From Podarcis bocagei (Eukaryota), in assembly GCA_964188305.1 (NCBI GenBank), contig OZ076885.1: a stretch of 64,000 nt of DNA, one strand, 5' to 3'. Below the pieces are notes generated by a model. The model made no database searches. It was given only the letters and a program-made list of their open reading frames with translations, and was not told where the DNA came from. Each line of letters starts with the position of its first letter. Positions within the stretch are counted from its first letter, which is position 1. The position numbers and the translations under genes are program-made. Positions 6,001 through 64,000 of the stretch are shown here, one piece after another.

Positions 6001-9000
6001 TAAAGAAAGTAGCTGTGTGCAGCAACGCATTAGAAAGCTCATGCCACTATGCATTTGTTACGCCTTTGAAGATGCTTCAGGGCTTGCCCATGTTTCCTAC
6101 AAGCAACGTTGACTGTGAAGTCAGTCCTGTAATACATGCCAGCAAAATGCAAATCTCCTCACCTTCCTCTTGGTCCTGATCCGCCACTTTTGTACTATGA
6201 AAAGAGAAAAACAATGAGGCTTCATACCTATTCAAACATGCGTCGAAAAGTTAAGTTCGGTAAAGGAAGTGTTTTCATAGCATTAAATCAAACTCTGAAG
6301 CCCTACCCATTGTCCCACTGTTGGAACTAGAAACAGGAACAACAGGAACTAGAAACAGAGATTTTTCCTCCTCACTGAAACTCTCAGGGGGAGACCCATA
6401 AGAAACGCTAAAATGATTCACTAGTTGATATCGAAGGCTAGCATTCCAGATACAAAAAAAATGGGGAAAGATTGTTTACACACATTTCTGCCTCAGGGGG
6501 CAAGTCCTCTGAGCCCTCCTTGTTGTAATAATTGTAGCACTGGTCACAAACACGAGCCGGGTTTTCCCTACACTCTTCCACAGTCATTTTCTTGGTTGAA
6601 CACGAGCTGCACACCAGCCTCCCGCAACGTCTGCAGTGATGTCGTCTATTAAACTGAGACACAAAGAGGAACTTTGAAGGGAGCAATAGCATTTCAGTGG
6701 TTAACATTTTACCCATTCAAGACCCACAGCCATTTGGATCTTTGGGGCACAGTAGCAAATACGACTGACAGAAGTGCAGCAAGCTGGCCAAAGAGCCAAC
6801 GGCAGACACACCCGTTCAAGTGTTCCAGTTACATGTCAAGTATGGCCTTGGGGGTTTCCTCACCATAGTAAAACGTTCCGTTTTGCAGACCATGCACGTG
6901 ACTTCAGTCTCATCGGGAATCCATTGCTGTTTTGGTGGGGGCTTCTCTGGTGGCACAAACTCCTCTGGGGACACAGTTTGCTGTAGGCTTCTCTCTCTCA
7001 TGCTGGAAGAATGCGTTGCATCTTGATGATAAACAAGAAACGAAACCAAAAAATGGAGAATTGAAATATTATATTTATTTATTTCATAAAATGTATATAC
7101 CACTAGATTGTAAGTAAAAGCCTCAAAACAATCACTGCTACCCTTCAGTGACAAGGCAAAGGATGTGCTAGTAGAAGTTCTTGTATGAGCTTTTGGTGGG
7201 GCTCATCCATTGAATCCCACCCAGAAATTATTATTTTTTAAACTACTACAGCAGAAAGCAGATTTAAGAGAAAAACACGAGTATGAACACAACATCCAGC
7301 CATTAGACCTTCTCTCACCAGGAGAATTAACTGGAAACTGTTCCGTCGATTCTGATTTAGACAACGTATCAGACTCGGATCCCCGACACAAATTCTCCTG
7401 CATCTGAATCACAGAATCTAAAGGCAAAAGAGAAAACCATTTTTATCTGCAGCAAAGAAGATTAGAATGATTCATCCAAAACTGGATCAGCACATGTGAT
7501 TCAAGTGACTACAGTTTTTGTACAAGCAATTTACTAACCCAATGGCATGCACAAGAAGGTTCAGACTTTTGCATCTAAGCAAAAGGAGAACAATACGGAT
7601 ATTTAGAAACATAGGGATACTAGGCCTTCTAATGTTCTTTTTCCTCAACTCTTTTGACTACACCAACTTAAAAATATACAAAAAGTTGAGCCAGAAGAAG
7701 TAAGGGGCTTGGTTCACTGCCTTATGCCCTTTGAATGCAGGCTCCACTGCCACGGTCAGTAAAACACATTAGTAGTACTGCACTGTGTGGCATTAAGGAA
7801 AACAGGAGAAGAAATGGAGCAGCACAGGGGCTTTTCAATTAAGTCGCAAGCCAAAACCATGGGGTCACAGAACCCAAAGCGATAAGGTGGATTTGGCTAG
7901 AATCCAATCTGCCTTACCAGCTGAGAATCTGTCATGTTTGGTTAAAGAGCACATGGAACATCTTCACTGATTAGAGATTCCCAAAAGCAAGTCACCTGAT
8001 CTTTTCTCTTTTAACGAGAAAGGGAAGTCAAGGGCTTTCCCAGCATACTTGGAGAGCAAGGCATCAATGTCTTCTACCGTAAAGCCTATCTCTTGCCCAA
8101 CCAAGAGCTGGTGCAGTGTCTGTACAGCCACGGCTACCCAATCCACCTTCATGTTCATCAAGAGCTGCTCCAACATGAGCAGTGGCTTGCAGGACAGGTG
8201 AGAGTAGTTAGCACGGTAAGGCTCAGGAAGAGTCAGTAAGACCTTGGATGTAGAAACAGAAGAGAAACAAAAATTATTTATTTCATAAAATTTATATAAT
8301 GCCTGATTATTATTATTTTTTTAAAAAAACCCAACCCTGAAACCTCTCTCATTACTTGAGAGAAGAACCCCAAAACCCAGCAACGCAGTTGCAAATTTCA
8401 TATCTGCTTACCTTTGATCCCATATAAAGGGCCTGAATTTCATTATGGCGCATAATTGTTAAGTGTTTGTAGAAGTGTGTGGTGAGATAATCTGCAAGGA
8501 AATGAGAAGCTGCCAGGCTGGGATGTTTATCAAGACACTGTTCACTTATGACCAGCTGAATGTCTGGGTCTTCTATCCTTTGCAAGAGCTACAAAGAAAG
8601 TGAACAATGGAGAGTTAATTCAGATCATAAAATAATTTCACACTGCCAGCTGAAGACATCTGCAACCTAAAATTATCTGTTTAACACAGCTCTACACTGC
8701 ACTTTATGAGGCTAGGTTTTCACGGCAGCACCAAACAAATATATCAATCACAATACAGGAAATATAGATAATGAGGCAGAAAAGACAACTAAAAACATTC
8801 CAAGCACAATGGGACCTAGCAAATGGCTGCTCATTTTATGAAGAAGGCTGCTGAGCAGGGCTACAAGGAGGCCTTCCTGCTGGTACACCATATGACTCTA
8901 CCACAAACAAGTGTCATACATGGAAGGGAGATGGATTTGTGTCCACAGGAACCATAATTTGCCAAAGGCTCCTGGGCACATGCTTGTCATTTGCTCAGAC

Positions 9001-31948: not shown

Positions 31949-32959
31949 CTTCCTGCTTCAAAATGCAAAGACTGGAACACATTAGATCCTATTCTTAAAT
32001 CATATCTGTCAAACATTCACTTACAATGCACTTCCTAAAATGAGAGATGGAAATTTACAGAAAGATTCATGTCTAGAAGTGGAACTTTAGTCTTTCCCTA
32101 CACAAAGTTAAAATGTCTAGCAGGACAGACAGCTAACCTAATACATTTGATTGTCCACATAAACAAACAAACACTTTTATAAAATAACAAGAATAGCAAT
32201 TGTCTTGTTTGCCCATTGAAAATCCGTCAAAACATTTGCAGGTAAACAGGTGAGAGTGAAAACAGGAAAGTGTAAACTGCAGCTGTCTAGCCTTCCCTCA
32301 GGCCTAACAATAACAAGTTGAGAGACTAAGCTGATCTTGAGTGGAAATACAGGGGACAGTATGGATGGCAAGGGAAGCTATAAAAAGGGATTAAATCTCT
32401 GTGAGGATATGGAAATCTCTGAGGGTGCTGGGGCTGAGCCTAAGCCAGAGACGGTTAGCAAATTCTGCATTAAGAAGAGCAAAACCTTTTAGCCCAGCAA
32501 GAATTATTCCTGCAGGTTAAAAAACTCCCCCAAAACTTTAAGTCATCTAGTGGACTCATTAATAAACCAGGGCTCATTTATTATACCTGAACAGTTCTTA
32601 TGGTGCCACATTCGACTTAACTGCTCTGTGGGAAACTTTCCACTGCCAAATAAACTTTGCCCAGCTAATCTATGATGAATCAAGCCCCATTGCTCATGCA
32701 ACTTGCTCCAATTCACATTTCAGTTTCTTAAAGAAGTACCTTGAGAGGCAGTACTATTCAAGTATCAAGCTTAAAAGTAGGTACCTTCACTCAGAATTAC
32801 GTCCCACCAAACAAGCTTAGTAGAGCTGACTCCAAAGAGGGCAAAAGAATGTATCACTGACGTTCCGTGGCTGCTTTTTATACTTGACAACTTTGCTAAA
32901 AGGTTACTCTCATCACGTGGGCAACTGTTAATTTAAAAGCCTGGCTATATTTAAATAAC

Positions 32960-33500
32960 CACCCGCAACAGTCTACTAGTGCCTTCCTCGCTCGTCTCGG
33001 CAAGCAAGCTGCCGTGCCCATCTCATGTGAACTTCTCCGCCTAAATACCCCCGGCAGGAGGCTCTCCTGCGTCCTCCTCCGAGTCTCGTCTCACCCAGCG
33101 GAGTTTTTCCTTTTCGCCCCCACCCTCCGCATACTTTCCCCCGGCATGCAAAGGCAGCGCAGGTAGGGAACCAGCAACTCGTGCCTCGCATAGGACCCAC
33201 CTGGAAGAGAGGTCCAATCACCAGTAGAATATACACTCGCCTCGTCTCAGGAGTTTATCCTGCTGTCATCAGCGCTACCTGCACTCCCAGACAGAATCAA
33301 GTCCGGTTGCCGCGGCCATGTTGAAAAGCTAATCAGGTGATCGAAGCGACAGGCGGAACAACCGGCTTATTGGGCAAGGGGGACGCCATCTTTCTCTAGG
33401 GCATTGAAGCCCAACAGTTGCCATCTCTGAAGCGGGCAAAAATATCACGTGTCTGGAAAGACAGGCGCTCGTGGTCCGCATAACGTACAATTTATTTACT
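32960..33500. promoter_or_regulatory. CpG-rich promoter and non-coding exon 1 of ZFYVE26 (donor at 33279), probably bidirectional
   Basis: CpG-dense segment. YY1-type GCCATGTT 33315-33322 and GCCATCTT 33385-33392, CCAAT (minus) 33369-33373, TCACGTG E-box 33445-33451, minus-strand donor CAG|GTAGCG at 33279. Confidence 0.75.
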
Positions 33501-34947
33501 GATTTTTAAAATTTTGTATTCATCCGAAGATCCCGTTCTCCCTTATCCTCTCTAGTTCGGTTGGCTGGGATTTACCCAGATTTACCATACAGTCCTCCTT
33601 TATTCCACTAGCTGGCCGGATCCCTAGCTTTCGTTATAGAAAATAAAATAAGCTAGTGTCTCATCAGGCAAAACGTGTAGGCCTTCCGAGCCATTCTTCT
33701 TTTTTTAAAAAAGCTACTGTAGCCTGCTGTCATATTTTAATGTTGCTAGCATATGAAGCAAGTAATAACTGTGACTGACATTTAGGAAAGCAGAGCACAC
33801 AGACTAAAATGCTAGACTGACACACCTACTGTCTGGAACTTCTTGATTCATTTTGAAGTCTGGAGGCGACTTCAACGGAGAAATGGTTATGGCCCTATAG
33901 AAAACAATTCTGAAATTGAGGGTTATTGTGTAGCTGTGATTGGGCCTGTGCACCCCAAAACAAAAGGTAGTAAGTCTCTCCAAGTCATCTTTTACATCAA
34001 GAAAACGGATCACCCCAACCTTTGCAAACATATTAAACAGTTAACATGCCAATACTTAATGCTAATAAAATTAATCATTAAGAGAATAGGGGGTATTTTA
34101 TATGGCAAAGTGGTCTAATATTGTTATACTCATATTGCTAAGAGGTGGAAGAGAGTACAGTAGTTTACTACAACCCTGCAGTGCAGTTCAGAGAATCCAG
34201 GACTGGTATATTTCAGGAAATACCTTTGTGGGACCCACATTACATGTGAATGCATCTAGTCCCTTTGGAGGGAGGTGACTCTTTTATAGTGTTTATTATT
34301 AGAGCTTCTAATAGCAAATAACTCGTTAGGTCAATGAAGACTGCAATCTCTCTTACCTTGGAGTAAGTCCTGCAGAACTGAGTGTTACTTGCTTCTGATT
34401 ATAGGATTGCGATGTGTAGGGTGAAAAAACTTGTTATATTTTCATTTCATTGGGTGCCATTTACTTCACCATTCAGGTCTGATCGTGAACTAATTTACTT
34501 CAGCCTTATTGTCAGTCTTAGTGCTTTTCAACACAATGAATTTCATGTACTTCCAGGCATTATTTATTTATATGCCATTGTATGTGACAAGGGTACAAGT
34601 ATATCCTCTATTATATGTGTATAAAAACTGTTGTTGTTTTTGCACCTCTGAAGCCATTATTTGAAACTTACTGGTTGATCAATGGCTAAATGAAAATTCC
34701 CCTATTCCCAAAGCATTATGTCAAATATTCTTCCCTCTTACTCTGTCCAGCATCCATCTGAAGATGTTGACTGTTGTGTGACTCAGCTATCTGCATGGGT
34801 GGTGTCTAACTGGTGTTTGCTAGAGATAATGTTCCCCACTACATCCTCTATTCTGGCTCTTTTGTTTGTTTTGCTTATAGGCAGGAAAAGAACAAAACTT
34901 TTTCCATAGACTTCTAAGAAGGCCTGCGTGTAACAGGCCAAAAAAAC

Positions 34948-34974
34948 ATGACGGAAAATGACAGGTGCACAACT
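34948..34974 (+). CDS. Galectin-like first coding exon (MTENDRCTT)
   Basis: aaacATG with A at -3, donor ACT|GTAAGT in phase 0. Upstream acceptor tttgcttatag at 34880 implies a further 5' non-coding exon. Confidence 0.7.
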
Positions 34975-37900
34975 GTAAGTATTGAAAAACCTACTTTCTA
35001 CTTTATTGCAAGCCTATTTATTTGTGTAAGTATGTAAAGAGGAAGAGGCGAATGAGTTTTTATTTAACTTATTCATTTTAATGTTACATCTCTTTGAATC
35101 CTGGAAAAAAAAATCAGATATGGGTTTGCCTGCCAGTGCTAATCCCGTAAATGTCTTTGTTTGGCTGCAGCATCCACATTGTTCAGACAGAGTGCTATTA
35201 AATGCTTCTGATGCACTGAAATCAGAAGCAGAAAAAGAGGGCTCATAGAGTGGGAGGCCACACAAACTGAACCAGTCTGTTCCCCTTTGCGAGTACAGCA
35301 GCATACATTTCCTCCATACATTTACCATATTGTAAATAAGCCAAGCGATTCCCTACCCATTTTAAGTGACTATGTCAGTGAAAGGTGTCAGTCAAGGCTG
35401 CAGTTCCTGCCAACCATGAAATTATTAGTTGTGAGATAACATGATTGTTTTAGATGTTTGAAACTGCTTTAAGTCCATTTTTATTTTTCATTTTTAAAAA
35501 ATCACTTGCCACCTTGGCAAGAAGGGCAGGATATAAATTTAATAATAATAAATTGCCACGGAATGCAGTGAGACTTACTTCTGAGTAAATCAATTGAGAA
35601 CCAGGCTGCACAAGAAAAGCTACTGCAAAGTACTTCTGTGGCTGGCATTTTAAGATTAAGATTCTATAGAAATAACTGGTTAAATAGAAAATGGAAAATG
35701 TTTTGCAACTGTGAAGCTTTAACATAACCAATGACGGTCATGAAAACTTTTTAAAAATGCATATCAAGTAACCACACCCATCCTTGTGGATGGCAGGGCC
35801 AGGAATCAATCTAGATTGAAAGCAGCATGCTAAAGACAAGCATGAACTATTCCAGACTGAGAAAACACTATATTTTTGTGCTACAAATGGCTTGGTGTTT
35901 GTGCAGGCATTGTGGTGCAGTACAGAATCAATCTGCAAGGAGCTTTTATTTTTGGAATGAAGCACTTTTCAGGAGCAAATAGATCTAGATTGTTTGTGTA
36001 CTATGTAGAGAAAAACAAGCACTCAGTTTCCTTTGATTCTAGAATAAAATGTCATGTGCACAGCTTAAGAGTCATCCAGTACAGTACATTTTTGTACTGG
36101 CAGTTCATAATTGCTCTGGGAGGTGTTTGGACACACATTTCAAACATTCCAGATTACATTCCATTCTGTGATCAGTGCTTTTTCATTGTCTAGCAAGTAT
36201 TCATGCGATAGGTCCCCTCACTCCATCTCTCCAAAGGACTGGAGGGAAAGAGTTCAAAGTTATGCCTGAATACGAGATTAGTGGTTTTGTTCTTGGAGTA
36301 TTCAAGAAGGTTTCAATGAAGGATTGCTATGCCTCTAGTGAGCAAGGGATGTGGCACCTTTGACCCTCCAGATGTTGTTGGACTCAAGAGCTCCCATCAG
36401 CTGCAGCCAGCATAGCCAATGGTCATTTTAATACATCAACATCTGGAGGGCCACAGGTGCATTATCCCTGCTGAGTAGCCATCTCTCTTAAACAGGATTT
36501 GGCAGTGGGTATAGGGTGGGAGGAGATTGTAATGCTTCAAAAACTGACAAAGTATTTACAACCAGAGACCATGCTTTAGCATATAAATAAAAAAACAATA
36601 GTTCTGAAATAAGAGGCATATTGTTATGTGCTACCCCAATCTCTGAGTGGTGAGAAATTCCAGGAGTTCCAGTGCTTACCTAGGGTTTGGCTTCCTTGAA
36701 ATGAAAGTCAGTGGAGACGACACTTTCTTTAGGATCAGGGGTAGCAATTCCCATTTCATCGCTTGTGTCCTCCCCTGCAGTTTTATCCTCACAAAAGCCC
36801 TTTGAGGTAGCTAAGGAAGAGAGAGATGGGTCACCTAGTGAGCTTTATAGTTTAGGATTTGACTCTGGGGCTGTGTATACACCATACATTTGAAGCACTT
36901 TACCTCTCACAGAACCACAATTTCCAGCACCCTTAATAAACTACAGTTCCTAGATTCTTTGGGGGGAAGTCATGTGCTTTAAATATATGTTGTGTGTACA
37001 CAGCCACAGGTCTCCATTTCCAGTCTCACATTGTAAGCATTGTATTACACTGACTGTTCACTACACATTTATTAAGTCTAGAGCAGGGGTCAGCAACCTT
37101 TTTCAGCTGTGGGCCGGTCCACTATCCCTCAGACCATGTGGTGGGCCAGACTATATTTTGAAAGAAAATATGAATGAATTCCTATGCCCCACAAATAACC
37201 CAGAGATGCATTTTAAATAAAAGCACACATTCTACTCATGTAAAAACACCAGGCAGGCCCCACAAATAACCCGGAGATGCATTTTAAATAAAAGGACACC
37301 TTCTACTCATGTAAAAACACGCTGATTCCCGGACCATCTGCAGGCCGGATTGAGAAGGTGATTGGGCTGCATCCATCCCCTGGGCCTTAGTTTGCCTACC
37401 CCTGGTCTAGAGTAACCCAAGTGTGAAATGAGGTTATTCAACCTTTTCGGGCTTGAGGGTACATTTGGAACTGTTGGAGGTACCATAAATATCCATTTCA
37501 CGGAAGAAAAACAGGTGATGCTCACCCACCCCCATAACATGCAAAACACCTAGTCCTCCCCACAAACTCCCCCAAATAAAACCGAGACAAAAAAAGCAGG
37601 CAATCTTTCTAAAAGTCAGCTTCCTAACCAACCAAAAGCCCAAAAAACTACTTTAAAAAATTGAGAGGAGTCAGGGCCTTGACAAGTGCCAAGGGGGCTG
37701 TCTGAAAATGATGTAGGGCCCACATTGTGGGCCCCAGGTGTAAAGAAATGCTTTCATGAGGCAGCGCAATCCTCAGCAAGACCTACGGTTCAAGGTAGCA
37801 CTCTTGTGTACAGTTATCTGGGTGTAACCCTCAGTGAACTCCAGTTAAAAGGTTTGAGCTTCACACCCATTTTCCTTTCTCCTGCAGGGTGGCTCTTTGG

Positions 37901-39071
37901 ATGAAAGACTGTAGCTCAGTTGTAGGTAGAGCACTTGCTCTGCATGCCTAAGGTCCCAGGGTCAAACCCCAGCATCTCCAGAGAGGACTGGGAATGTCCG
38001 CTGTCTGAAACCCTGGAGAGCCACTGCCAGTCACATTATTCCAGTACCGAGCAAGATGAACCAATAGTCTGACTTGGCATAAGACAGATTTCTATGTTGT
38101 TGTTTTTAATGCAGAGCTTAAAAGACAGGTACACCTAGGAAGAAAACTCCTGTGTACGTATAGTATTAGTAATAGATAAATATGCAGCTTTGTATTTTAT
38201 TGTACAGATGTCATTTTCAAACACATATTCAGAATTATTGTTTCCCCCATTAGGTGGAGAAATACGTCGGTGAGATTAAAGGAGGACTAAGGCCAACCAT
38301 GAAAATCACTATCATGGGGGTAATATGCCCTGCCCCCAAGAGGCAAGTGTGTCAGCCGGCATTCTAGCAGCTGCTTCATGGATGTATCTGGCGAAAATTG
38401 CTCATAGGTGCAGATCTATTGAGGAATAGCATTAGCTGGGCAAAAAGGGAGAGATAGTATTGTCAATATGGAGAACATCAGAGGAGCACTGAACATAATT
38501 CACTATTTCTGAGCACTGTAGCTCAGCACAGCATAACTGACCATTCTTAGCTCACACATCCAGACACTAGTCCCTTCCAATTCTAATCTTCTATGATTCC
38601 ATAATTAAGTCTCCTGTGAGCCCAAAGTAATCACTCAAAAAGATGGCTGCCTGCTGGAACTCTGCATGCTTCTTTCAATTCGCCTTCGCTGGGGATGGGT
38701 AATCCTGCTGACCCATCGCTGCTTCAGTTGTGGCTGGAGCACTGAATGATCCTGATTCATCACAGAATTGCCTCTACTGTCACCAAGGCTCCCTATTGCC
38801 CCCCCCCCCCGCATGAGCCAGTGCTGTGTGCTTCCATCCTTCCCATTGGGAGGGCAGGGGAAAGGGGTCGTAATTTTGCTATATTTGTTTGTTTGACTGG
38901 ATCATTCCAACACTTCTGATGCAAAGATGGAGGAGAAATAGCTGTTCCCAGAGGAGGCATTCCCAGAATAATGCCCCATGCACAGAGCCAGCCGTATCAG
39001 TAGGCAGAAAGCGGGAACCCAACTGTTTCTTCTGTACCGCCCAGCTGTTTCCTTCTGTTGCTGTTTTGTTC

Positions 39072-39119
<48 letters not shown>

Positions 39120-41168
39120 TTTTTATTTGTACCCCGCCCATCTGGCTGGGTTTCCCCAGCCACTCTGGGCGGCTTCCACAGAAACCAAAAAACACTAAAA
39201 TATCATACATTAAAAGCTTCCCTGAATAGGGCCGCCTTAAGATGTCTTCTGAATGTCAGGTAGTTGTCCATCACCTTGACATCCGATGGGAGGGCATTCC
39301 ACAGGGCGGGCGCCACCACCGAAAAGGCCCTCTGCCTGGTTCCCTGTAGCTTCGCTTCTCGCAATGAGGGAACCGCCAGAAGGCCCTCGGCGCTGGACCT
39401 CAGTGTCCGGGCAGAACGATGGGGGTGGAGACGCTCCTTCAGGTATACTGGGCCGAAGCCGTTTAGGGCTTTAAAGGTCAACACCAGCACTTTGAATTGT
39501 GCTCGGAAACGTACTGGGAGCCAATGTAGGTCTTTCAAGACTGGTGTTATGTGGTCTCGGCGTCCGCCCCCAGTCACCAGTCTAGCTGCCGCATTCTGGA
39601 TTAGCTGTAGTTTCCGAGTCACCTTCAAAGGTAGCCCCACGTAGAGCGCATTGCAGTAGTCCAAGCGGGAGATAACTAGAGCATGCACCACTCTGGCCAG
39701 ACAGTCCGCGGGCAGGTAGGGTCTCAGCCTGCGTACCAGGTGGAGTTGGTAGACAGCTGCCCTGGATACAGAATTGACCTGCGCCTCCATGGACAGCTGT
39801 GAGTCCAAAAGCTGTGAGTTCTGCCTTGTCCCTCTAATCTGGCCTGCTGCTTTATGTGCAGTGCAAGAAGCTATCCCATCACCCCTGGTGCTGAAGGAAA
39901 ATTAATCTGCATGTCTGGTCAGCTGTTTAAAATTTGCTTAAGTAGCCACGCACAATGCATCATTGCCTCATATATCTGTGCTGTTTCTTACAGAGCACTA
40001 TGATGATGTCACACTAAAAAGGCAGGCTCTGTGTCATTTCTGATGTATGTTTCTCAACAGCTCTCATAATGCTTTTTCAGCGTCTAGGCCAGTGCAGTTT
40101 AGCTATTTTTCTCCAATTGCAGCTGGAGGTAAGCATTTAATGCAGGGTTAGAGAACCTGTGGCCCTCCAGAGAAATTGCTGGGCTCCCACCAGCCCCAGG
40201 CTACATGGCCCATGGTGAAGGATGGTGGGAGCCACAGGTTTCACATCCTTAGACTAGGCCATACTTACCCTGGAAACAAATATGACATTATAATGCCACA
40301 GCATGTGATAAATGAGCTCACTATTATGTTAGATTGTTGAATTGTTACTTATCACATGTTCATTCCTTCAAGTTTTTCAGTGACTTTGCTCTGTGACCCC
40401 ATGGATGCCAATCTGGACATTGGACTGTTGTTTGCAGTCAGCTTTCTTGAGAAATCCATTGTCCGGAATTCACGGATTGCTGGGAAATGGGGTAAAGAGG
40501 AAAAGACCATTCCCTACTTCCCATTTACAACAGGGGAGTCATTTAAGGTAATTTTACTTGCTAGTATGGGAGACAGATATATAGACATAGATATAAACTG
40601 CCTAAGACCCTCTGGCCCAGTATTGTCTCCTTTGACTGACAGCAGCTCTCCAAGGCCTCGGGCAGATTTTCTCTTTCAACTCTTCTGATCATCTAACTAT
40701 AGGTGCTTGGAACTAAAGTTGTAGTCGTGTTTGTAATAAACATGTCCTCTATTTGCTCCATCTGTATTTACAGGATCAAAAGACCATTTATTTATTTATA
40801 AAGATATTTCTAGACTGTCAAGTCATAATAAAATATGGTTGCCATTTAAGTAGGGTAGATCTTCCAGTGTAATATTTCCAATTGATTTTCAAAAGCATCT
40901 ACGCATAATCAAGTCCCATTGAAATCAATAAGCTTTCGACTCATTACTTTGTGGGCGCCCAACTTTATTGGGATTGCTGTCAGTCTCTGCCCCTGCCACC
41001 CATGGATCTCCTTTGTTTTTTCAGATGGAGCTCTTGTGTGAGCATCAGCAGATTCGGGTTTTGCTTGATGGACGTCAGCTCTGCAGTTTCACTCACCGTG
41101 TGCAGCCTATGCAAAGGGTGACAGCTTTACAAATCTCCGGAGACATCAAGCTCACCAAAGTGGCTTGA
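34948..41168 (+). CDS. Galectin-related protein (LGALSL/GRP-like paralogue), 4 coding exons, 144 aa
   Basis: Exons 34948-34974, 38254-38342, 40373-40547 and 41025-41168 join in frame (27+89+175+144=435 nt). Motifs GEIKGGLRP, RNSRIAGKWGKEE..IPYFPF..F, ELLCEH, FTHRVQ..ISGDIKLTKV resemble LGALSL but are clearly divergent. Confidence 0.88.
37084..37404. mobile_element. hAT-type MITE with internal ~65-bp duplication
   Basis: CAGGGGT..CAA / TTGCCTACCCCTG; 8-bp TSD GTCTAGAG; repeated unit at about 37187-37250 and 37258-37320. Confidence 0.85.
37903..38097 (+). mobile_element. tRNA-derived squamate SINE (relatives on minus at ~10245-10395, ~21965-22142, ~28905-29080)
   Basis: tRNA-like head TAGCTCAGT..GTAGAGC..GGTCCCAGGGTCAAACCCC followed by a body shared among copies. 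Confidence 0.65.
38254..38342 (+). CDS. Galectin-like exon (89 nt), GC donor
   Basis: VEKYVGEIKGGLRPTMKITIMGVICPAPK; acceptor cccccattag, donor GAG|GCAAGT. Confidence 0.85.
39073..39810 (-). mobile_element. 5'-truncated L2/CR1-group LINE, ORF2 C-terminus + 3'UTR + (ATT)n tail
   Basis: Open 201-aa frame with ISRLDYCNALYVGLP..LQLIQNAAARL..LHWLPV..RAFSVVAPALWNALP; GC stem-loop 3' end; microsatellite tail 39074-39118. Confidence 0.92.
40373..40547 (+). CDS. Galectin-like exon (175 nt), central CRD exon
   Basis: FSVTLLCDPMDANLDIGLLFAVSFLEKSIVRNSRIAGKWGKEEKTIPYFPFTTGESFK. Confidence 0.9.
41025..41168 (+). CDS. Galectin-like last exon (144 nt to stop)
   Basis: MELLCEHQQIRVLLDGRQLCSFTHRVQPMQRVTALQISGDIKLTKVA*. 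Confidence 0.92.
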   Translation: MELLCEHQQIRVLLDGRQLCSFTHRVQPMQRVTALQISGDIKLTKVA

Positions 41169-41524
41169 AGAAAAGAATATATAATCCCCTATCTCTCCTT
41201 GGTTGGTGAAGAAATGTTCTCCTTATGCCATTGGATATTGTTCCTTACTTTTGCTCTTATGTGTGCTTCTTGAGATTTTAAATGAAGGCTGAGCTCTATA
41301 AATAGCCCTATTATACCTTGATAAGTTGCAGCAATATATTTCGATGTGCATTCTTTTCAAGCTGCAGCACTTTTGTCTATGGCTGTTTACACATCACCAG
41401 CTTAAAACTCAGATTCTTTTTCTCAATTCAGATTGAAGCTGGATTGAGGAGAAACGCATCAAAACACAGTATTTCATAAGAAATGACAGGGTAGATTTGA
41501 AGCGTAGCTATCATCATGTGTACA

Positions 41525-41721
41525 AAATAAAAAAAGTTAGTTCTTGGTATGAGCTTTCATGTGCATGCACACTTCTTCAGATACCATGCACACGAAAGCT
41601 CATACCATGCACACGAAAGCTCATACCAAGAACTAACTTAGTTGGTCTTTAAGGTGCTACTGGAAGGAATTTTTTTATTTTGACTATGGCAGACCAACAC
41701 GGCTACCTATCTACTACTGGA
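41525..41721. mobile_element. Penelope-like element end fragment with inverted arm
   Basis: Reptile PLE-type terminus (..taaggtgctac..accaacacggctacc, recognised from memory), inverted arms, 21-bp tandem repeat, 12-bp TSD ATCATGTGTACA at 41513-41524 and 41722-41733. Confidence 0.75.
41546..41585 (-). ncRNA. Minimal type I hammerhead ribozyme motif (PLE-associated)
   Basis: Minus strand GGUAU-CUGAAGA-A-GUGUGCAUGCACAU-GAAA-GCUC-AUACC. Confidence 0.65.
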
Positions 41722-43766
41722 ATCATGTGTACACTATTTCCTAAACCAGCAATGGGAGGATGTAGAGTTAATGAGACTATGTACACAGCCTATAATAAGC
41801 TACCATATAGTAAAAGGCAGCACATATGTAGTTGTACTTTTTTCTAGCTGTACATCATCTGATCTGAAGCATTTCTGGTGTGGACAGTCATGCAATGACA
41901 ACATGAAGAAAACAATGTGGTGAGAAAAAGGAGCATTCCTAATAAATCAGTCCCTATTCCACATCATGTGCATGCCCCCAACATAAGGGTGGATCAGACT
42001 AGGAAGACAGGACTTTACATGCACCTTTTCCCTAACAGTTGCATTTTAAGAAGCCAATATACAGAATTTCTATGAATTAGTCTCAAGGTCTCATCAAGCT
42101 TTCCTATGTGAAGGGGATGGTGAATGTGGACTATAGCTCTCATCATCCCTGACCATTGGTTATGCTGACTGGGGCTGAAAGAAACTGGAGTCTCACAACA
42201 TCTGGAGGGCAACAGATTCCCCATTCTTGCTATATGACTTCAGAGAAAACACACAGAATTCTCTGTGGGTGCATTTGGGATCTGGGCAAATGTTTTGGTA
42301 TGAAAGGTTGGATGCACAGAAAATAGTAATTTCCAAAACTGAGTGGGAGGGTTTCATATTATAGTGTTTAAAAATATATGCTCAGGCTTGAACCGGCAGC
42401 CAAACGCAGCAACTCTGCACATCATCTTTCCCTCTGGTTGTGACTGTTGAGTTTTATTATATAAAGTTGTTTTCCACAAACAACCAAATCCATAGGCCAA
42501 CTTTATGCTTGTCAGCAAGTCTCTTGTGCTTTTGAAATTATTAACATTTAAAGGCATACCACAAGTGGCTCATCACTGTTTATTTTATTTTTTAAAAAAC
42601 TTTTTTTGCAATTTTACAGCTACAGAATAAATAAACAAATCGGAAATACAAACAAATCATAGAAAAGATCATACAAAAAAAATATGGAAGATCATTAAAA
42701 CATACCCCAAATATCACTTTTAAATATGGTAATTACCTTCTGCGAAACCTGTGTCAGAGCTTCTTAAGTGTTTCATGGGACATTTTTACTTAAAAAGAAA
42801 ATACTATATTTGGCATGCAGTTCAAACTGCAGGAGTTACCCATCTTGAGACATCTAGCCTCATTATCCTCTACGGAAATTAATTTCCCACAGGTAAAACA
42901 CAACATAAAAAATATTGGACCTGCCATTTCCCCCTTTCCTCTGCCTTCTGGCAGAAGGTACTTCTGCTTGTAAGAGGTGAACTGTTCTCAGGAACTCAAA
43001 CTGGCCAGTGGGCTCTATACATGAACTTTCATATGGTCATACACAAATAGGCCAGCTTAAAAATGTATAATATGCTATAAAAAAACAGAACTGAAGCTTA
43101 AAACCATCTAAAAGCTGGCAATGAAATTGGGAGGAATTCAGTGTTGCGCTATGATGAACCTTCCATTTGTACAAGTATTTCATCTTGACAGGCAGAACAG
43201 TTTCCCCTGCTCTTCTCCCTCTGCATGCTATTCTGGGTGTTCTCTGGACACCCCCCCCCCTAGGCAACTTCAGGGGGAATGGGAGGAGGAAAGGAGAAAG
43301 ACCCATTGCACAAGTGGGAATCCTTATGCAGGGCTTCTGCTGATGGGGCTTGTTAGGCGAATCCCATCCTATATCCTTCTGGGCTGTAAAGGTGAATGGA
43401 AACGGATGGCAGAGGTCCAATTCAATTTCCAAGCTTGATGTCCCCATTCTAGGTTTGTCCAATTCTGTGTCATGTGATTTAGCTTTACTCAGATGAATGT
43501 ACCTGGTTCAGAATTCCCAAAATGATTCTAGGAAAATGAGGCATAAGTATTGTGGACCACATACAGGAACTGACTTTTTTAAAAATCTGAATGTACAAGT
43601 CTTCAGATACGGAAAGTGTGGTAAAGGCCCGAGTAGATTTGTTGGATGCAGGATTTATGTTTGGCTGAAACAACTCACTCGTGCATCTCAAAAACCAACC
43701 ATTATATTACCCCCAAAGCGATGATCCAAGTCAATGGTTTTGTCCACATAAGAAATTTGCAAATGT

Positions 43767-43894
43767 CTATGTTAGCTGTTTGATGGCTTCAATCCAGCTT
43801 GCCCTCTCTGCCTTGGAACTGGCCTGTATAAAGTAGTGAATGTCATTCTTTGTTATGATTTTGAAGAGGTTGCCCTGCACATTCCCTTTCACTC
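43767..43894 (-). CDS. PLEK2: PLEK2 exon 9
   Basis: VKGNVQGNLFKIITKNDIHYFIQASSKAERASWIEAIKQLT*. Confidence 0.95.
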
Positions 43895-46800
43895 CTGCAA
43901 CAAAAAGGAAAAGGGAGGGGAATGTTAGCAAGGTGCAGGGACAACACAATTGCTGCAGTAACAGCAAAATCTCACAAGGGAGAGAGTTTGATAACTCAAC
44001 ACAGTTTTGCTTTTGTTGATAAAAGAGTGTACCACTGCATTGATATGAATACAGGCTTGGATCTGGATCCAGCTAACCCGGTGTGCTAGCAGAAGCTAGT
44101 GCAAGGGCTCCCGCTAACACAGTGGGTTTCTTCCCCCTCTTGTCTGCCTGAACACCCACACACCTTGTCCAAATCCACTTTGGAGGGTTGAGAGAATTCC
44201 TAGAACAGCAGGAGGGGAAAGGGCGTACCATTTCATCTGAAAAGCAGAAATGCTTGCACGGATCAGAAGAGTGATGTGATGTTGAATTCTTCCCTTTATC
44301 TTTACATGGCCTCCCATCCACCCAAGTGCCATGAAAGGCCAAAAAAGCAACACTTATTTTCTCCATACTATACTGTCCTTAATCTGGCGATATGGCTGCT
44401 TGAGCCAGCTATTTATAATCAAGAGAGCTACAGCCAGTCCTATTGTCACAGTTTTTCAAGGTGCCCTAATTGGTGTTCAGACTGGAGAAGGGGCAAACAG
44501 GGCCTGGCCCCCTGGCCTTTATGACAATTTCCTAAACTACTGTTTTTGGAAACCTACTGGGGAGGTGTGATTTGACTAAAATAGTAGGGTGCAGAATTTA
44601 TGGATTTCATTACGCCCACCACCATTACCACTTAATCTCCCATAACTGGGAGCCCAGGCCCTAATATCTGAAATGGCTTCAGCTTTCCCAGTGTAAGCAG
44701 CTGATTCACACTAAACTTTATTCATAAACAAGAAAGGAACACGTGAAGAGCTCCACAACCAAAGGAACTGTTATGTTCATACTTGCCTGTTGGGACTCCA
44801 TTATCTTCCAATGCTGAGACAAGGCAACCACGGAGAGAGAATCCCCCAACTGGTCGGTTATCTTCCTATGGTGGGTGGAAAGAGTCCAAATGGAGAAGTA
44901 AGGAATATGAATTATATGTTCTATGCAACACATTTTATTTTGGCAAGACATGCAGTAGCTGGCCACATCAGCACAACATGAATCTTGTCCCAGCCTGTTC
45001 CTCTTTGGGATAGGCCTCTGGAGGTTCTAGGTGTTAATTATGTAAAGAGGTAGTATCTTAATTTAAAAAATTATACATGTCTTCCTCCAAAGTGTTTTAA
45101 TAACAGAGTTGAATTCTAAAGACAAGGGGGGAATTATAGGAACCTAGGAAGCTGTCTTATACTGCATCAGACAGTTTGCCCATCTATTATTTATTAGTTG
45201 ATTCCATTTATGAATTGCCTTAATAAAAACATTATCTAGGCAACATACACAGCAAGATCAAAAAACCAACACATATTATATAATTCAATGAAATCATAAA
45301 TAAATTGATAAAATCAACCCAGCAGTGTTATAAATCCAATCTAGATCAACACAGGCTGTGAATTATACCTTTGAAGCATATTTTCCCCCCTCAAATAATT
45401 CTGGGCACCGTAGTTTCTTAAGGGTTTCTGGAAATTATAAATCTGTGAGGAGTAAATTGCGGTGCCCAAAATTCTTTGAAGGAAATGAGCTTTAAATATA
45501 TGGTGTGCACACAGCCACAGACCAAACTCCAGCAACCAACCTAATTAGCATAACAACAAAACACAGCGCCATGTGGCCTTGCCCCTACAATTGAGGGAGC
45601 GGGGGAACGAAATGCACACACACCCCAGGATGCCACATTTGTTGACCACAAGAGGTTTAGTTTCAGCCTCACATGATTCTAACTTAAGCACAAAAAAATT
45701 CAGATCTATTTTACCAAAAAGTTACACACAAGACATGAGATAGTTTATGTACTGGGAGTCCACCATCTCACCTTTGTGGGGTCATAATAGTGTAGGAAAG
45801 CAGGGTCAGCCCTCAGGACAAAGCGCCTCACCTTCCAGTTTTTCCTCTTGTGTCCCTAAAAGTTGAAAAGATTAATAGATCCATTTCACCTTCCATTTCT
45901 CAGTTTGTCCTTCTGAAATGGCCTGTAGATCTGCATACACTGAGACATTTCTCGTTATCTGTTTTACCACATTTTATCTTCACAGCAGCCCTGTGAAACA
46001 GGTTTAGCCCAGAGGAATATTGTCATAGCCAAGTAAGTTAGACAAAGAAACATTGTCGGAGGCAGAATTGAAGTCATTGTGCATTTTGCTAAGCCACTAC
46101 ATCAACTTCCTTTCCTAGCTCAAACAATTAAAGACAGAAGTTTCTGAATAGCAACTGTAGGCTAGATTCAAATGCTTGTTTTTGAGAACCAAATTTGCTT
46201 CAGAATCGGAATATAATAATGTACACATTGGGACCGCTGTTTCATAGAAGATCTGATTTTAGTGCAAATTATTTTGGAATTCTGCTGAGAATGACAATTC
46301 AAAAGGATCACCTGGCGCACAAATCCTTGTGGGGGATTCTATTCACCAATCACTTCACAATGGTCTCTTAATTCCATTTTAACTTTCAGTGCACTGAAGT
46401 GTGTGGGGGAACAACCTGATTTACAAAACTATTTGAAATCAGTATAGATAGTTCTGTGTCGGGGCGGGGGGGGGGGCGGGAATCAAAGGCTTTCCTGGTC
46501 AGAAAATTGTTTTTTCTGATTATGATTTGAACAGCATTCCTTATGTCACACAGAAAGCTAAACCATACATTTACATTTAGAAATATCACAAGGCCCAGGG
46601 CTTTTTGTGTTGTACCACATCAGGTGAAAGATTGTGTTTCTCAATTATTCTCCACCTCAAACATTATTTGCTAAAGGAAAGGTAGCATATCTGCAAGAAG
46701 GATTCCAGTTAGTGTACTAAAAGCATATATATATTTCCTACTGAAGTATTAGGCATAGAACACCACATTTTTCCCCTATACATTTGGTCCTATGTGCACT

Positions 46801-50459: not shown

Positions 50460-53093
50460 CCATCTCCTGGAAATTAAGGATAAGTGTGGGTTTCAGGTGT
50501 GCTGCTTTGATGTGTGAATACTATAATATGTTCAATTTTTAAAAATACAGTATGATAAAGTTGTATATCTATCACTTGCCTTTCCTAGCTAAACTAGAGA
50601 AAATGTGTAAGATTTGTGATAGGATCTCACAACATTTTTCTAGAGCTTAGAAGTAGCCAGTTTCAACACTGCTCTTCACCCCTAGCTAAAGGGAGAATGT
50701 CCTAGCTAATATGACCCACACATACACGGTACCAGCACTGCCCCCTTCTAATATGTTCCATTTTCTAGAGCCAACACAGCAACAGTAATTTATACCAAAT
50801 GGGAAGAGAATTGGACATACCGGCCTGTTATACTCCAAACATGGACAAGTCATTGTGCAGCCATCCAAAATAATCCTGCCCTTTGGAGAAGGCTCTTTCT
50901 TTCCTCCCACAACTTTATAATATAGCAGTCTGTCCTGGAGAAGAACAAACCACCTTGCTTTCCAGTTGTGGACAACATGTCCCTGCAAACAAAAAGTGTC
51001 AGTCTTAGGTGCAGCTTATAAACAACATTTATTACCTGCTTTGGTGTTGCATACTCATGAACTTCTTACTCACTGCACTCAGTTGATAATTTATATAGCC
51101 TCTAATGTGCTCTCATCTGGTAGGACTTTAAACCGAGTTCTTACCTTCTTTCCACAAATCCAAGGTTTCCCCAGATGTATTTTAGTGATTCCACAAGCGA
51201 GCTTTTTGCAACGATAGCACATTTTCCCAGGCAGTCATTATAGGTATATGATCACAATAACCTGGTGCCAGTACTGAGTACCCTAGTATCCCCGGGGAAA
51301 AGCACTAACTACTATTATACAATGGGAAAGATGCTGATTCACCCCAACTAATGAAATAGATTTGTCTCACTCAGATCCAAATTCAGTTTTACAGTCACTA
51401 GACATGAGTGGTTCTCAAAAGGTCCTACTCTACCATACAGCAAGGTAGGGCAGTAGATTTTTATTTATTTTTTGCAATAGTTTTTTTTTGGGGGGGGGAA
51501 TCCAATACTTTTTGAAGTGGTGGGCCCTAGCATGGGGGAGGCATCATTTGGTACTCTGCCTCAGGCAGTGACATGTTTTTGGTGTTCCTCACCTTTAATT
51601 TTTACAACAGAGAGGATTCAAACCATACATAGCATGGTGGGGTTCTAGCTTTAAAAACCCTGATTTCAGAAAATGCTCTCAAGTCCCATACAGCAGTTCT
51701 GATCTGTTTTTAGTTTACCCAACATATTGCTATCTCAACAACATGACGGGACATTTCACTGTTGGAGGCAGTTTGCCTCTGAATATCAGGTGTTGGAAGC
51801 ACAATGGACAGAGATGTCCCACTTGCAGGTTTCCCATAGACATCGTCTGGCCACTGTGAAAGCAAGATGTTGGACTAGCTGGGCCTTTGGCCTGATCCAG
51901 AAGTTCTTTGCTTATCTTCTTCACTCTACCCCCAAGCAGACGGCTCTGTCAGCCAACTGCAGTACTACCTAGTCTCTGTTCCATTTTTCCTGTTTTCCCT
52001 TAGTGGGGCTAATGGAAACCTCTGGGGGCAACTTAGATCAGGGAAAGAGCATGGTGGGGAGGAGAAAGAATAAATGCCCAATCAAATTAGGAACTCTGTG
52101 GCTTCTCTGAAGTAGAGAAAATAAATTCATTCATTAATCTCCTGCATCATGTGCAGTTTGGCCCTTAGACATGAGCATAGGGAAAGCACATTGGACTGGA
52201 TAAATTGTTAGAAATCAGGGCCCTTCTGAAGATCTGATAAAGACAATGACAGATTAAGAGAGGTGGTATATTTCAGATATTGCAAAAGGATAATTTGAAT
52301 AACTTGGGCTACATTTTGAACCTGGAGCCCTCCTACCATAAATTGAGTGTGCACAATAAAAGGCAAAAGATCAAGATGAGCAGACAGGTAGAGCAAGAAG
52401 AACTAGATTGTTGCTCTGACCTGTTGCACCCTAGGTCAGAAGGGCAGGATATAGGGAGAGCTGCTTGAAAAGAAGACAAGAATAAAAGATGACAGCAGCG
52501 GTGGATCTTGAGGAGATCTGCATGCATGCAAGACAGGACCTGACAGTGAATAAGGTGCTGCAGGTCAGAGCAAGAGAGGAATGTTAGCAGAATGTTAGCA
52601 CAGCACTCTAGAGCAGTATCTAAACCTTATACATCCTTTGCCTAGCTATGGGAGACATTCATGTTGGAAAAGTAATAATCTGGCAAAATGTATTTACTTC
52701 TGACATTTATAGCTCACTCTCTTTCCCAAACGAGGGCAAACATATTTTTAAAGAGGAGGTTGCAAGTCTGAAATCACCTAGAGATAAAACTGTGGCTGCA
52801 CATTACAACCGTGGCTGTGTGTGTGCTCTCCCATTCATTCACTCTGCCTCCGGGACTCTCACACCACTGATTTGGGAAGCAGTGTACACATGCCATTAGC
52901 CACAATCCATATCTATCTTGTCGTTCCTTATGAAATATTGCTTATTGATGTTTTCCCCCCAAAACCAGCAAGAGAAGCTGAGAAAAAGAACAAACTGGTT
53001 GTGTTTAAGCTGGTAATGTACACATCGCCTGTGACTGCAGCTTACCTTTTTAACAAGAAAGCCTTCCTTCAGAATTCCACCCCCTTCCTCCAT
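43767..53093 (-). CDS. PLEK2: Pleckstrin-2 (PH-DEP-PH), 9 coding exons, 354 aa
   Basis: Exons total 1065 nt in frame. ILKEGFLVKKGHVVHNWKARWF, DEP GSVLVDWLISNSF..FLDDSTALYTF, C-terminus ERASWIEAIKQLT*. Confidence 0.97.
44787..44865 (-). CDS. PLEK2: PLEK2 exon 8 (GC donor)
   Basis: EDNRPVGGFSLRGCLVSALEDNGVPT; donor CAG|GCAAGT. Confidence 0.92.
45772..45855 (-). CDS. PLEK2: PLEK2 exon 7
   Basis: GHKRKNWKVRRFVLRADPAFLHYYDPTK. Confidence 0.95.
47148..47249 (-). CDS. PLEK2: PLEK2 exon 6
   Basis: AENYKKRTTSKENIHLNIIELSGTILKQGFLIKQ. Confidence 0.94.
47923..48110 (-). CDS. PLEK2: PLEK2 exon 5
   Basis: SVLVDWLISNSFAASRLEAVTLAS..FLDDSTALYTF. Confidence 0.95.
48890..48981 (-). CDS. PLEK2: PLEK2 exon 4
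   Basis: HIVDKMHDSSSGIKLTPNTEQGSTYKESFT. Confidence 0.93.
50043..50224 (-). CDS. PLEK2: PLEK2 exon 3
   Basis: LVIKLKTKTNTEYFLDFCSREERDAW. Confidence 0.94.
50411..50459. repeat. (ATCT)n microsatellite
   Basis: Read directly. Confidence 0.95.
50821..50982 (-). CDS. PLEK2: PLEK2 exon 2
   Basis: GHVVHNWKARWFVL..CPCLEYNRP. Confidence 0.94.
53046..53093 (-). CDS. PLEK2: PLEK2 exon 1
   Basis: MEEGGGILKEGFLVKK|gtaag. Confidence 0.92.
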
Positions 53094-58870: not shown

Positions 58871-62925
<4,055 letters not shown>

Positions 62926-64000
62926 CTAGTAAAAAAACCAAAAATGTAAGCCTGCCAGCATTCCTTAAAATGCATTTTAACAGGAGAGAAAGGACCAACA
63001 CCAAGGCATTTCTCAACACTGATAATGGAAAGCAGGAGGGATTTGCGTGAACATGTTCTCCAGTCTTTCTCCTGCCTATGGTTAAGAAATAGGTACTGGC
63101 CTAAATCATTCCAGCTATCATTTGTTTGTAAACACAATTTATAGTACAATACTGTCCAAGCATTATTACAAAATGTAACTTTTTAATATAACTTTAAATA
63201 TTGTAAAAAAAAGTATGTCTACATTCTCAAGAGAATTTTTTTTATAAAAAACCCCCAAATTACTACTTTATAACAATTGTTTTGTCAATATAAATTTAAA
63301 CTGTTACATCCTTTGAAAATTGTATTTTATAATATTCTTAATAAGGGTATCACTGTGTACATGCACTTATTATTCTAGTACATTAGTCCATTTTTCAGTG
63401 AAACAACTATCTTGTAATCTTTGTTCTCTGACTCTAATGTAGTATACCGTAACTAGTTATATTTTATATTTAATTTATTATAGAAAAGTACTATGTTCTT
63501 TATTTCAGAGAATTACCGAACATATTAAATACATCTGAGCTATGCAGTGCTTTTTTTCTAAAATAACATTTAGGGGTACTCTCATTTTCCTACTCATATT
63601 GATGCCAAACTTAGATTCACAAAATGTCTAGGGGTATGTGTACCCTTGTGTGTCCCTCAGAAAAAAAGCACTGCAGCTATGTCAATTTCATCTTCAACAA
63701 TTGTTACTATGCCCTGCATACATTTTATTAAGGCTAACGGGGAGTTAGATACCATAAAAACAGAATTTTTACAAAAAACCTCATTGTACCATAACAGACA
63801 CTTTGAATTTTATACATGTTTCCAAATATAATTCCATACATATGATAACAGCTTGCTATCACTTATCTAAGCAGTTAAAATCTAACACAAACCTATTCCT
63901 AAGTAAACTACTTGCTATTTAAACATACTAATCTCATAGAAGCAGACCTTGTGCATCATTAGTCTTAACTTCATCTGCACATTCTGCTATGGCTGTTAAG

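Follow-up and report, generated by a model that had tools for sequence, protein, structure and literature searches.

The 64,000-nucleotide stretch of the Podarcis bocagei genome analysed here (contig OZ076885.1 of assembly GCA_964188305.1; hereafter the window) carries a galectin-related gene, LGALSL2, between the genes ZFYVE26 and PLEK2. LGALSL2 lies on the + strand and its four coding exons, delimited by reading the sequence (435 nucleotides, nt, in total), splice to a protein of 144 amino acids (aa) with a single galectin-fold domain. This protein is identical at 144/144 positions to the RefSeq entry XP_028581528.2, annotated in Podarcis muralis as 'galectin-related protein A-like isoform X1'. 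It is practically certain that the stretch holds the orthologue of LGALSL2 in wall lizards (Podarcis); the gene is also known as galectin-like 2, LGALSLA and, in RefSeq, 'galectin-related protein A-like'. An initial annotation, made from the sequence alone, had proposed an intact four-exon, 144-aa galectin-fold reading frame; the exon reading, the RNA junctions and the identity to the RefSeq protein all bear it out. The coordinates of the exons and of other features of the window are given in Table 1.

Table 1 Exons of LGALSL2 and other features in the 64-kb window
Feature	Position	Strand	Description	Basis
LGALSL2, exon 1	34881..34974	+	94 nt; AG at 34879-34880 just 5'	direct reading
LGALSL2, exon 2	38254..38342	+	89 nt; VEKYVGEIKGGLRPTMKITIMGVICPAPK + 2 nt	direct reading and RNA joint
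LGALSL2, exon 3	40373..40547	+	175 nt	PF00337 match; RNA contigs and reads
LGALSL2, exon 4 (last coding)	41025..41168	+	144 nt including TGA	PF00337 match
ZFYVE26 (upstream gene), FYVE exon	6438-6716	-		domain match
PLEK2 (downstream gene), PH-domain exon	50686-50988	-		domain match
Open reading frame in the intron 2 insertion	39203-39808	-	201 aa; resembles the C-terminal portion of retrotransposon proteins	

Exon 1 starts with 5' untranslated region (UTR) at 34881. Its coding part runs from the ATG at 34948 to 34974, encodes MTENDRCTT and is followed by a GT donor (ACT/gtaagt). The first exon had initially been described as 27 nt long, which is right for its coding length but not for its size, as these 27 nt are part of a 94-nt exon. 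An in-frame stop precedes the ATG, and the N-terminus MTENDR is common to the LGALSL2 orthologues in the alignment. The N-terminal tail is 9 aa long, in agreement with the ~9 aa first estimated, against ~35 aa in the related gene LGALSL. Exon 2 has the acceptor side cccccattag and a GC donor (AAGAG/gcaagt). Exon 3 encodes strands S3 to F3 of the galectin fold, with the IPYFPF loop and the altered positions of the sugar-binding site (L58, A60, S62, V69, N71, W78, E81 and K83). Exon 4 encodes strands F4, F5, S2 and F1 (MELLCEHQQIRVLLDG...LTKVA), and the 3' UTR extends downstream of it. Both exons match the Pfam profile PF00337 separately, exon 3 at profile positions 29-85 (E = 7e-12) and exon 4 at positions 86-130 (E = 2.9e-10). 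Since the two open reading frame pieces correspond to consecutive parts of the same profile, their continuity would not be expected by chance. The set of 89, 175 and 144 nt is the CRD2-type exon structure, in which three exons encode the carbohydrate recognition domain (CRD), and the lizard protein comprises hardly anything beyond a single galectin beta-sandwich of this exon type. RefSeq also has a 120-aa isoform X2 starting at Met25 which, as annotated, would be devoid of strand S1. The window includes 132 N letters.

The transcription of the gene was studied using four RNA runs, one of them as raw reads, mapped over positions 34700-40699. Contigs of two runs span the joint between exons 1 and 2 (34974>38254, GT..AG), as do 14 raw reads that begin at 12 different positions, and a contig of the third run has it with one substituted letter. 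Contigs of three runs contain the joint 38340>40371 which, given two ambiguous letters, equals 38342>40373 and corresponds to a GC-AG intron. This joint is also found in 23 raw reads, which begin at 16 positions, so the GC-donor exon put forward in the initial annotation is actually spliced. A contig that runs beyond 40547 goes on with ATGGAGCTCTTGTGTGAGCATCAGCAGATT, the 30 letters that open exon 4, and all three junctions of the gene are present in RNA. In the raw-read run, every exon read has its first mate on the - strand, which indicates + strand RNA if the library was stranded in the usual way. LGALSL2 is transcribed from the + strand and spliced as predicted. Compared with the raw-read run, the window shows fixed differences at 34927 (C>A), in the 5' UTR, and at 38289 and 40424 (A>G in both cases). 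The two coding differences affect third codon positions and are synonymous (Leu CTA>CTG and Gly GGA>GGG, respectively).

The 5' end of the transcript appears to extend beyond the exons in Table 1. The contigs of two runs cease to match the window exactly at 34880/34881 and then carry 80-255 other letters. The position of this break, right after an AG, points to one or more additional non-coding exons upstream. The consensus of the loose ends, derived from two contigs with an agreement of 0.65, had no match in the window at up to 3 mismatches, and the disagreement between both contigs may point to alternative first exons. Between the 5' end of ZFYVE26 (-) and LGALSL2 (+), the patch 32900-33500 is GC-rich (52-55% vs ~38% around it) and contains CpGs. 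It is a candidate for a bidirectional promoter shared by the two genes, and the upstream non-coding exon of LGALSL2 could also lie there.

The closest relatives of the protein were gathered in several searches. An exhaustive HMMER search of representative sequences, in which the query was exon 3 only (58 aa), retrieved short proteins that are 71-96% identical, after which identities fall to <=57%; later searches used database orthologues and XP_028581528.2. A word-indexed search with an LGALSL2 orthologue retrieved proteins that NCBI labels 'galectin-related protein A-like', 'A', 'B' or '-like'. The best 120 of its 146 matches come from birds, turtles, crocodilians, tuatara, squamates, amphibians, coelacanth, lungfish, sharks, sturgeon, gar and teleosts, and no mammal is among them. 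The window protein is 72-95% identical to sauropsid LGALSL2 (72-78% to that of birds) and ~38-40% identical to LGALSL proteins. From shark to lacertids, the LGALSL2 orthologues are 52-95% identical to it. Compared with the P. muralis assembly GCA_964188315.1, the coding sequence has 5 synonymous and 0 non-synonymous differences and encodes the same protein; the DNA at the locus is ~93-97% identical, with one ~780-bp indel. These differences rule out that assembly as the source of the window. The lizard sequences thus independently confirm purifying selection on LGALSL2 in squamates. The labels of the teleost LGALSL2 sequences are inconsistent in automatic annotation ('A', 'A-like' or 'B'); in Takifugu, for example, the gene between ZFYVE26 and PLEK2 is a 'B'.

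The relationship between LGALSL2 and LGALSL was studied with a maximum-likelihood tree (IQ-TREE) of 51 rows: 23 sequences of each, one lamprey protein and the C-terminal CRDs of four tandem-repeat galectins as outgroup. The tree is split in an LGALSL2 clade (ultrafast bootstrap/SH-like approximate likelihood ratio test = 95/93) and an LGALSL clade (100/99). Both contain sequences from cartilaginous fish, ray-finned fish and the lobe-finned/tetrapod line, and mammals are present in the LGALSL clade alone. The window protein branches within the squamates of the LGALSL2 clade as sister to Zootoca, and the tree does not fix the position of the lamprey sequence. A search with an avian LGALSL produced matches in mammals, birds, reptiles, amphibians, coelacanth, lungfish, gar, bowfin, sturgeon, bichir, sharks, chimaera and teleosts (best 120 of 284), the mammalian ones belonging to LGALSL. 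The motifs G.IKGG.RP, IPYFPF and E.LCEH, which the initial annotation had matched to LGALSL, are common to both clades of the alignment. The true LGALSL of P. muralis (XP_028577711.2, 171 aa) is located on OZ076956.1 and LGALSL2 on OZ076954.1, so that LGALSL does lie elsewhere in the genome, as first supposed. Its exons of 89, 178 and 144 nt have the same phases, which agrees with the 89-nt and 144-nt sizes given in the initial annotation, and are accompanied by two extra 5' coding exons (~35-aa tail). Judging from this phylogeny, LGALSL2 and LGALSL are ancient sister genes that parted before the split between cartilaginous and bony vertebrates. The initial suggestion of a second lineage kept in sauropsids holds as far as the separate clade is concerned, but that lineage is also found in sharks, ray-finned fish, coelacanth, lungfish and amphibians; the suggested loss in mammals is congruent with their confinement to the LGALSL clade. 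The mouse protein mCG55122, called 'Galectin-like protein 2', is a trap of nomenclature: it also consists of a single galectin-related CRD but, unlike the non-mammalian LGALSL2, it nests on a long branch in the mammalian LGALSL clade beside primate LGALSL. By this position it is a mouse-lineage copy of LGALSL and not an LGALSL2 orthologue.

The gene neighbourhood points in the same direction. The order is ZFYVE26(-)/LGALSL2(+)/PLEK2(-), with LGALSL2 head-to-head with ZFYVE26 and tail-to-tail with PLEK2. On GCA_964188315.1, LGALSL2 is flanked by two gene calls of the opposite strand: a 2576-aa protein with FYVE and TPR_ZFYVE26 domains upstream and a 354-aa PH-DEP-PH protein (the pleckstrin-2 architecture) downstream. 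Takifugu and Rhea pennata have the three genes in this order and orientation too, and the basking shark again has a PH-DEP-PH gene downstream of LGALSL2. The place between ZFYVE26 and PLEK2 given in the initial annotation is therefore supported by the domain exons of the window and by these three genomes (GCA_964188315.1, Takifugu and Rhea). Farther downstream, the exon 62796-63149 (-) resembles one of EIF2S1; if this is right, the local order would be ZFYVE26 - LGALSL2 - PLEK2 - EIF2S1. In the literature, the syntenic genes listed for LGALSL2 are vti1b, zfyve26 and plek2 (Table 1 of PMC10343441). The ZFYVE26/LGALSL2/PLEK2 order of the window matches that table, which backs the identification of the gene; no vti1b was seen within the 64-kb window.

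The gene had at first been considered uncharacterised. In fact, it is annotated in RefSeq, was published as LGALSL2/LGALSLA in 2023 (PMC10343441), and the function of its chicken orthologue was studied by Günther et al. in 2026 (PMC13696195). Günther & Galuska named it 'galectin-related protein 2' (LGALSL2, alias LGALSLA), reported it in all Gnathostomata with a loss in Mammalia, and described its exon structure as CRD2-type (PMC10343441). The same authors read LGALSL2 as an ohnologue paired with LGALS3, and LGALSL as paired with LGALS8, and attributed the separation of LGALSL2 and LGALSL to whole-genome duplication (PMC10343441). The fold of the chicken protein is that of a galectin, and its S3-S4 loop is long; the key residues of S4 are missing from LGALSL2 and the Trp is kept in all species, and conservation is found on the F-face, the S-face being little conserved (PMC13696195). 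Chicken LGALSL2 is expressed mainly in testis and epididymis; in recombinant form, it attaches to carbohydrate-rich vesicles of Sertoli cells and of the proximal efferent ducts (PMC13696195). On a broad glycan array, no significant binding was detected, and very weak signals were obtained for a few fucosylated glycans (PMC13696195). Besides these two papers, a full-text literature search on lgalsla/LGALSL2 retrieved two transcriptome lists only. All the lizard measurements agree with the published descriptions: the clade, the flanking genes (zfyve26 and plek2), the CRD2-type exons and the short N-terminal tail are the same, and the lizard protein likewise lacks the S4 sugar triad, keeps the Trp, has a long S3-S4 loop and shows F-face-centred conservation. 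The gene is thus already annotated, named and partly characterised, an ordinary member of a known family and not a new one. Intron 2, which is GT-AG in rhea and pufferfish and GC-AG in the lizard, makes no difference in kind.

The AlphaFold2 model of the lizard protein has a mean predicted local distance difference test score (pLDDT) of 89.9, with disorder in residues 1-7 only. Its top Foldseek matches in the PDB are the galectin-related protein (GRP, i.e. LGALSL) of chicken (5it6) and human (3b9c and 2jj6), with template modelling (TM) scores of 0.87-0.95, root-mean-square deviations of 1.2-1.4 and 38-39% identity, followed by the C-terminal CRDs of galectins 5, 9, 4 and 8. LGALSL (GRP, HSPC159) is thus the closest relative of solved structure, and it shares with LGALSL2 homologous exons in the same phases (89, 178 and 144 nt, the middle one being 175 nt in lizard LGALSL2), motifs and a non-classical sugar site. 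It differs in sequence (~38-40% identity), in the longer N-terminal tail from two extra coding exons, which is an LGALSL feature, in its chromosome and gene neighbourhood, and in its occurrence in mammals, whose LGALSL has Arg instead of the Trp. The classical CRDs (galectin-9 C-CRD 3nv1, galectin-4 and galectin-8 C-CRD) have the same beta-sandwich (TM 0.83-0.86, 30-35% identity) and, as C-terminal CRDs, the same exon type as the lizard gene.

The differences from classical galectins are concentrated in the sugar-binding site, which was aligned with HMMER to the galectin-9 C-CRD and to a nematode galectin. The H-x-N-x-R of strand S4 in classical galectins corresponds to L58-F-A60-V-S62 in the lizard protein. 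V69-R-N71 is retained, and in W78-G-K-E81-E-K83 the Trp and Glu are retained with Lys in the place of the classical Arg. The seven-residue lactose-contact signature H-N-R ... V/N ... W-E-R is therefore not reproduced: Leu, Ala and Ser stand at three of its seven contacts (His, Asn and Arg in S4), and Lys at the final Arg. The Trp is present in at least 90% of the LGALSL2 and LGALSL rows of the alignment. The columns that are invariant over 32 LGALSL2, LGALSL and lamprey sequences are mainly F88-P89-F90, F96, E99, C102 and E103, to which D112, F119, G136, T141 and K142 can be added. They fall in the IPYFPF loop and in strands F3-F5, S2 and F1.

Several scenarios could account for a gene with these properties. 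One possibility, which the initial annotation itself had named as its refutation, is that it is the 1:1 orthologue of mammalian LGALSL (GRP/HSPC159), moved beside PLEK2 and present only once in the genome. LGALSL structures are its best PDB matches by both sequence and fold, and the 89-nt and 144-nt exons are common to both genes. Nevertheless, in P. muralis an LGALSL of 171 aa (XP_028577711.2) is encoded separately, on a different chromosome, the identity of the window protein to LGALSL (~38-40%) is far from that to sauropsid LGALSL2 (72-95%), and sharks, ray-finned fish and tetrapods are found in each of the two well-supported clades. Given the tree and the second locus, the probability of this scenario is close to nil. 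Alternatively, the gene could be a decaying relic or a pseudogene in the making, the GC donor and the tiny first coding exon being signs of erosion. The donor is indeed derived (rhea and pufferfish have GT), the RefSeq isoform X2 of 120 aa starts from Met25 without the first strand, and the canonical sugar triad is lost. Yet this loss is common to the whole long-conserved family, and the GC donor sits in an otherwise ideal context (AG/GCAAGT) and is spliced. Erosion is likewise difficult to reconcile with an intact reading frame whose every junction is used in RNA from four runs, with 0 non-synonymous vs 5 synonymous differences to an assembly that is ~3-5% diverged, and with the 52-95% identity to orthologues from shark to lacertids, which makes a relic extremely improbable. 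The explanation that we favor, an LGALSL2 orthologue with the mode of action proposed below, is held with high confidence as a whole.

How the protein works is a more delicate question. The replacement of the S4 His-Asn-Arg by Leu58-Ala60-Ser62 suggests that LGALSL2 is not a classical beta-galactoside lectin. As the residues invariant in both clades are mainly in strands F3-F5 and F1 and in the IPYFPF loop, protein contacts on the F-face seem most likely. LGALSL2 would then act through protein-protein contacts in the F-face/IPYFPF region, with at most a weak or unusual recognition of glycans, and its likely setting in the lizard, by analogy with the chicken, would be the male reproductive tract. 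We consider the chances of this mechanism to be evenly balanced. Some observations weigh against it or against the wider interpretation: a testis-biased expression in the lizard would be an extrapolation from the chicken, as the tissues of the RNA runs are given as codes only; the retained Trp78, Asn71 and Glu81 may leave room for real glycan binding; very weak array signals do exist for a few fucosylated glycans in the chicken (PMC13696195); and the apparent absence of LGALSL2 from mammals is read from hit lists (best 120 of 146 and best 120 of 284 matches) and from PMC10343441. The protein could accordingly be imagined as a working lectin with a functional S-face groove, in which Trp78, Asn71, Glu81 and Lys83 would bind a beta-galactoside or an 'exotic'/fucosylated glycan. 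The retention of V-R-N and W-G-x-E, that of the Trp in >=90% of LGALSL2 and LGALSL rows, and the binding of chicken LGALSL2 to carbohydrate-rich vesicles together with its very weak fucosylated-glycan signals (PMC13696195) would be congruent with that. Nevertheless, the His, Asn and Arg of S4 that contact galactose have become Leu, Ala and Ser, and the chicken protein showed no significant binding on the glycan array and little conservation on its S-face (PMC13696195), so that a working lectin seems unlikely, although clearly less so than the two scenarios rejected above. A more specific proposal, to which we attach little probability, is that squamate LGALSL2 keeps a non-galactoside glycan specificity through Trp78, Asn71 and Glu81 and has a lizard-specific regulatory layer. 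The variable S-face would then follow lineage-specific glycans of the reproductive tract, and the weak GC donor, the alternative 5' exons and the 120-aa isoform could add regulation not seen in birds.

LGALSL2 is a little-studied basic member of the vertebrate galectin set, and the present analysis is mostly a validation. The reading of the raw sequence had produced the right four-exon model, including the 27-nt coding exon and the GC-AG intron, and had correctly deduced an ancient galectin-related paralogue, possibly lost by mammals. The lizard data independently confirm the synteny, the gene structure and the transcription of LGALSL2 in squamates and open no new question.

The introns of the lizard gene have some local peculiarities. 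At the donor of intron 2, rhea has AAGAG/gtaagt and pufferfish has GT at the homologous site, and the lizard GC is also present in GCA_964188315.1. The idea that the GC donor is an ancient conserved feature was rejected, as rhea and pufferfish have GT; from this comparison, it is derived and lizard-specific. No Rfam family reached its gathering threshold when 32000-44000 was scanned, although a minimal motif of 40 nt could score below it. Intron 2 also contains an insertion of ~780 bp (39036-39817) that is missing in the P. muralis assembly GCA_964188315.1 and is skipped by a contig from the RNA library of another organism; the insertion is lineage-specific. It is composed of an AAT-type microsatellite and of the 3' part of a retrotransposon open reading frame on the - strand (Table 1), and the very high RNA depth over it is due to genome-wide copies. 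A second interspersed repeat is located in intron 1 (37100-37500), where the depth of RNA contigs reaches tens of thousands and many internal joints are seen. This extreme depth and these joints suggest a multi-copy transcribed element that is not part of LGALSL2.

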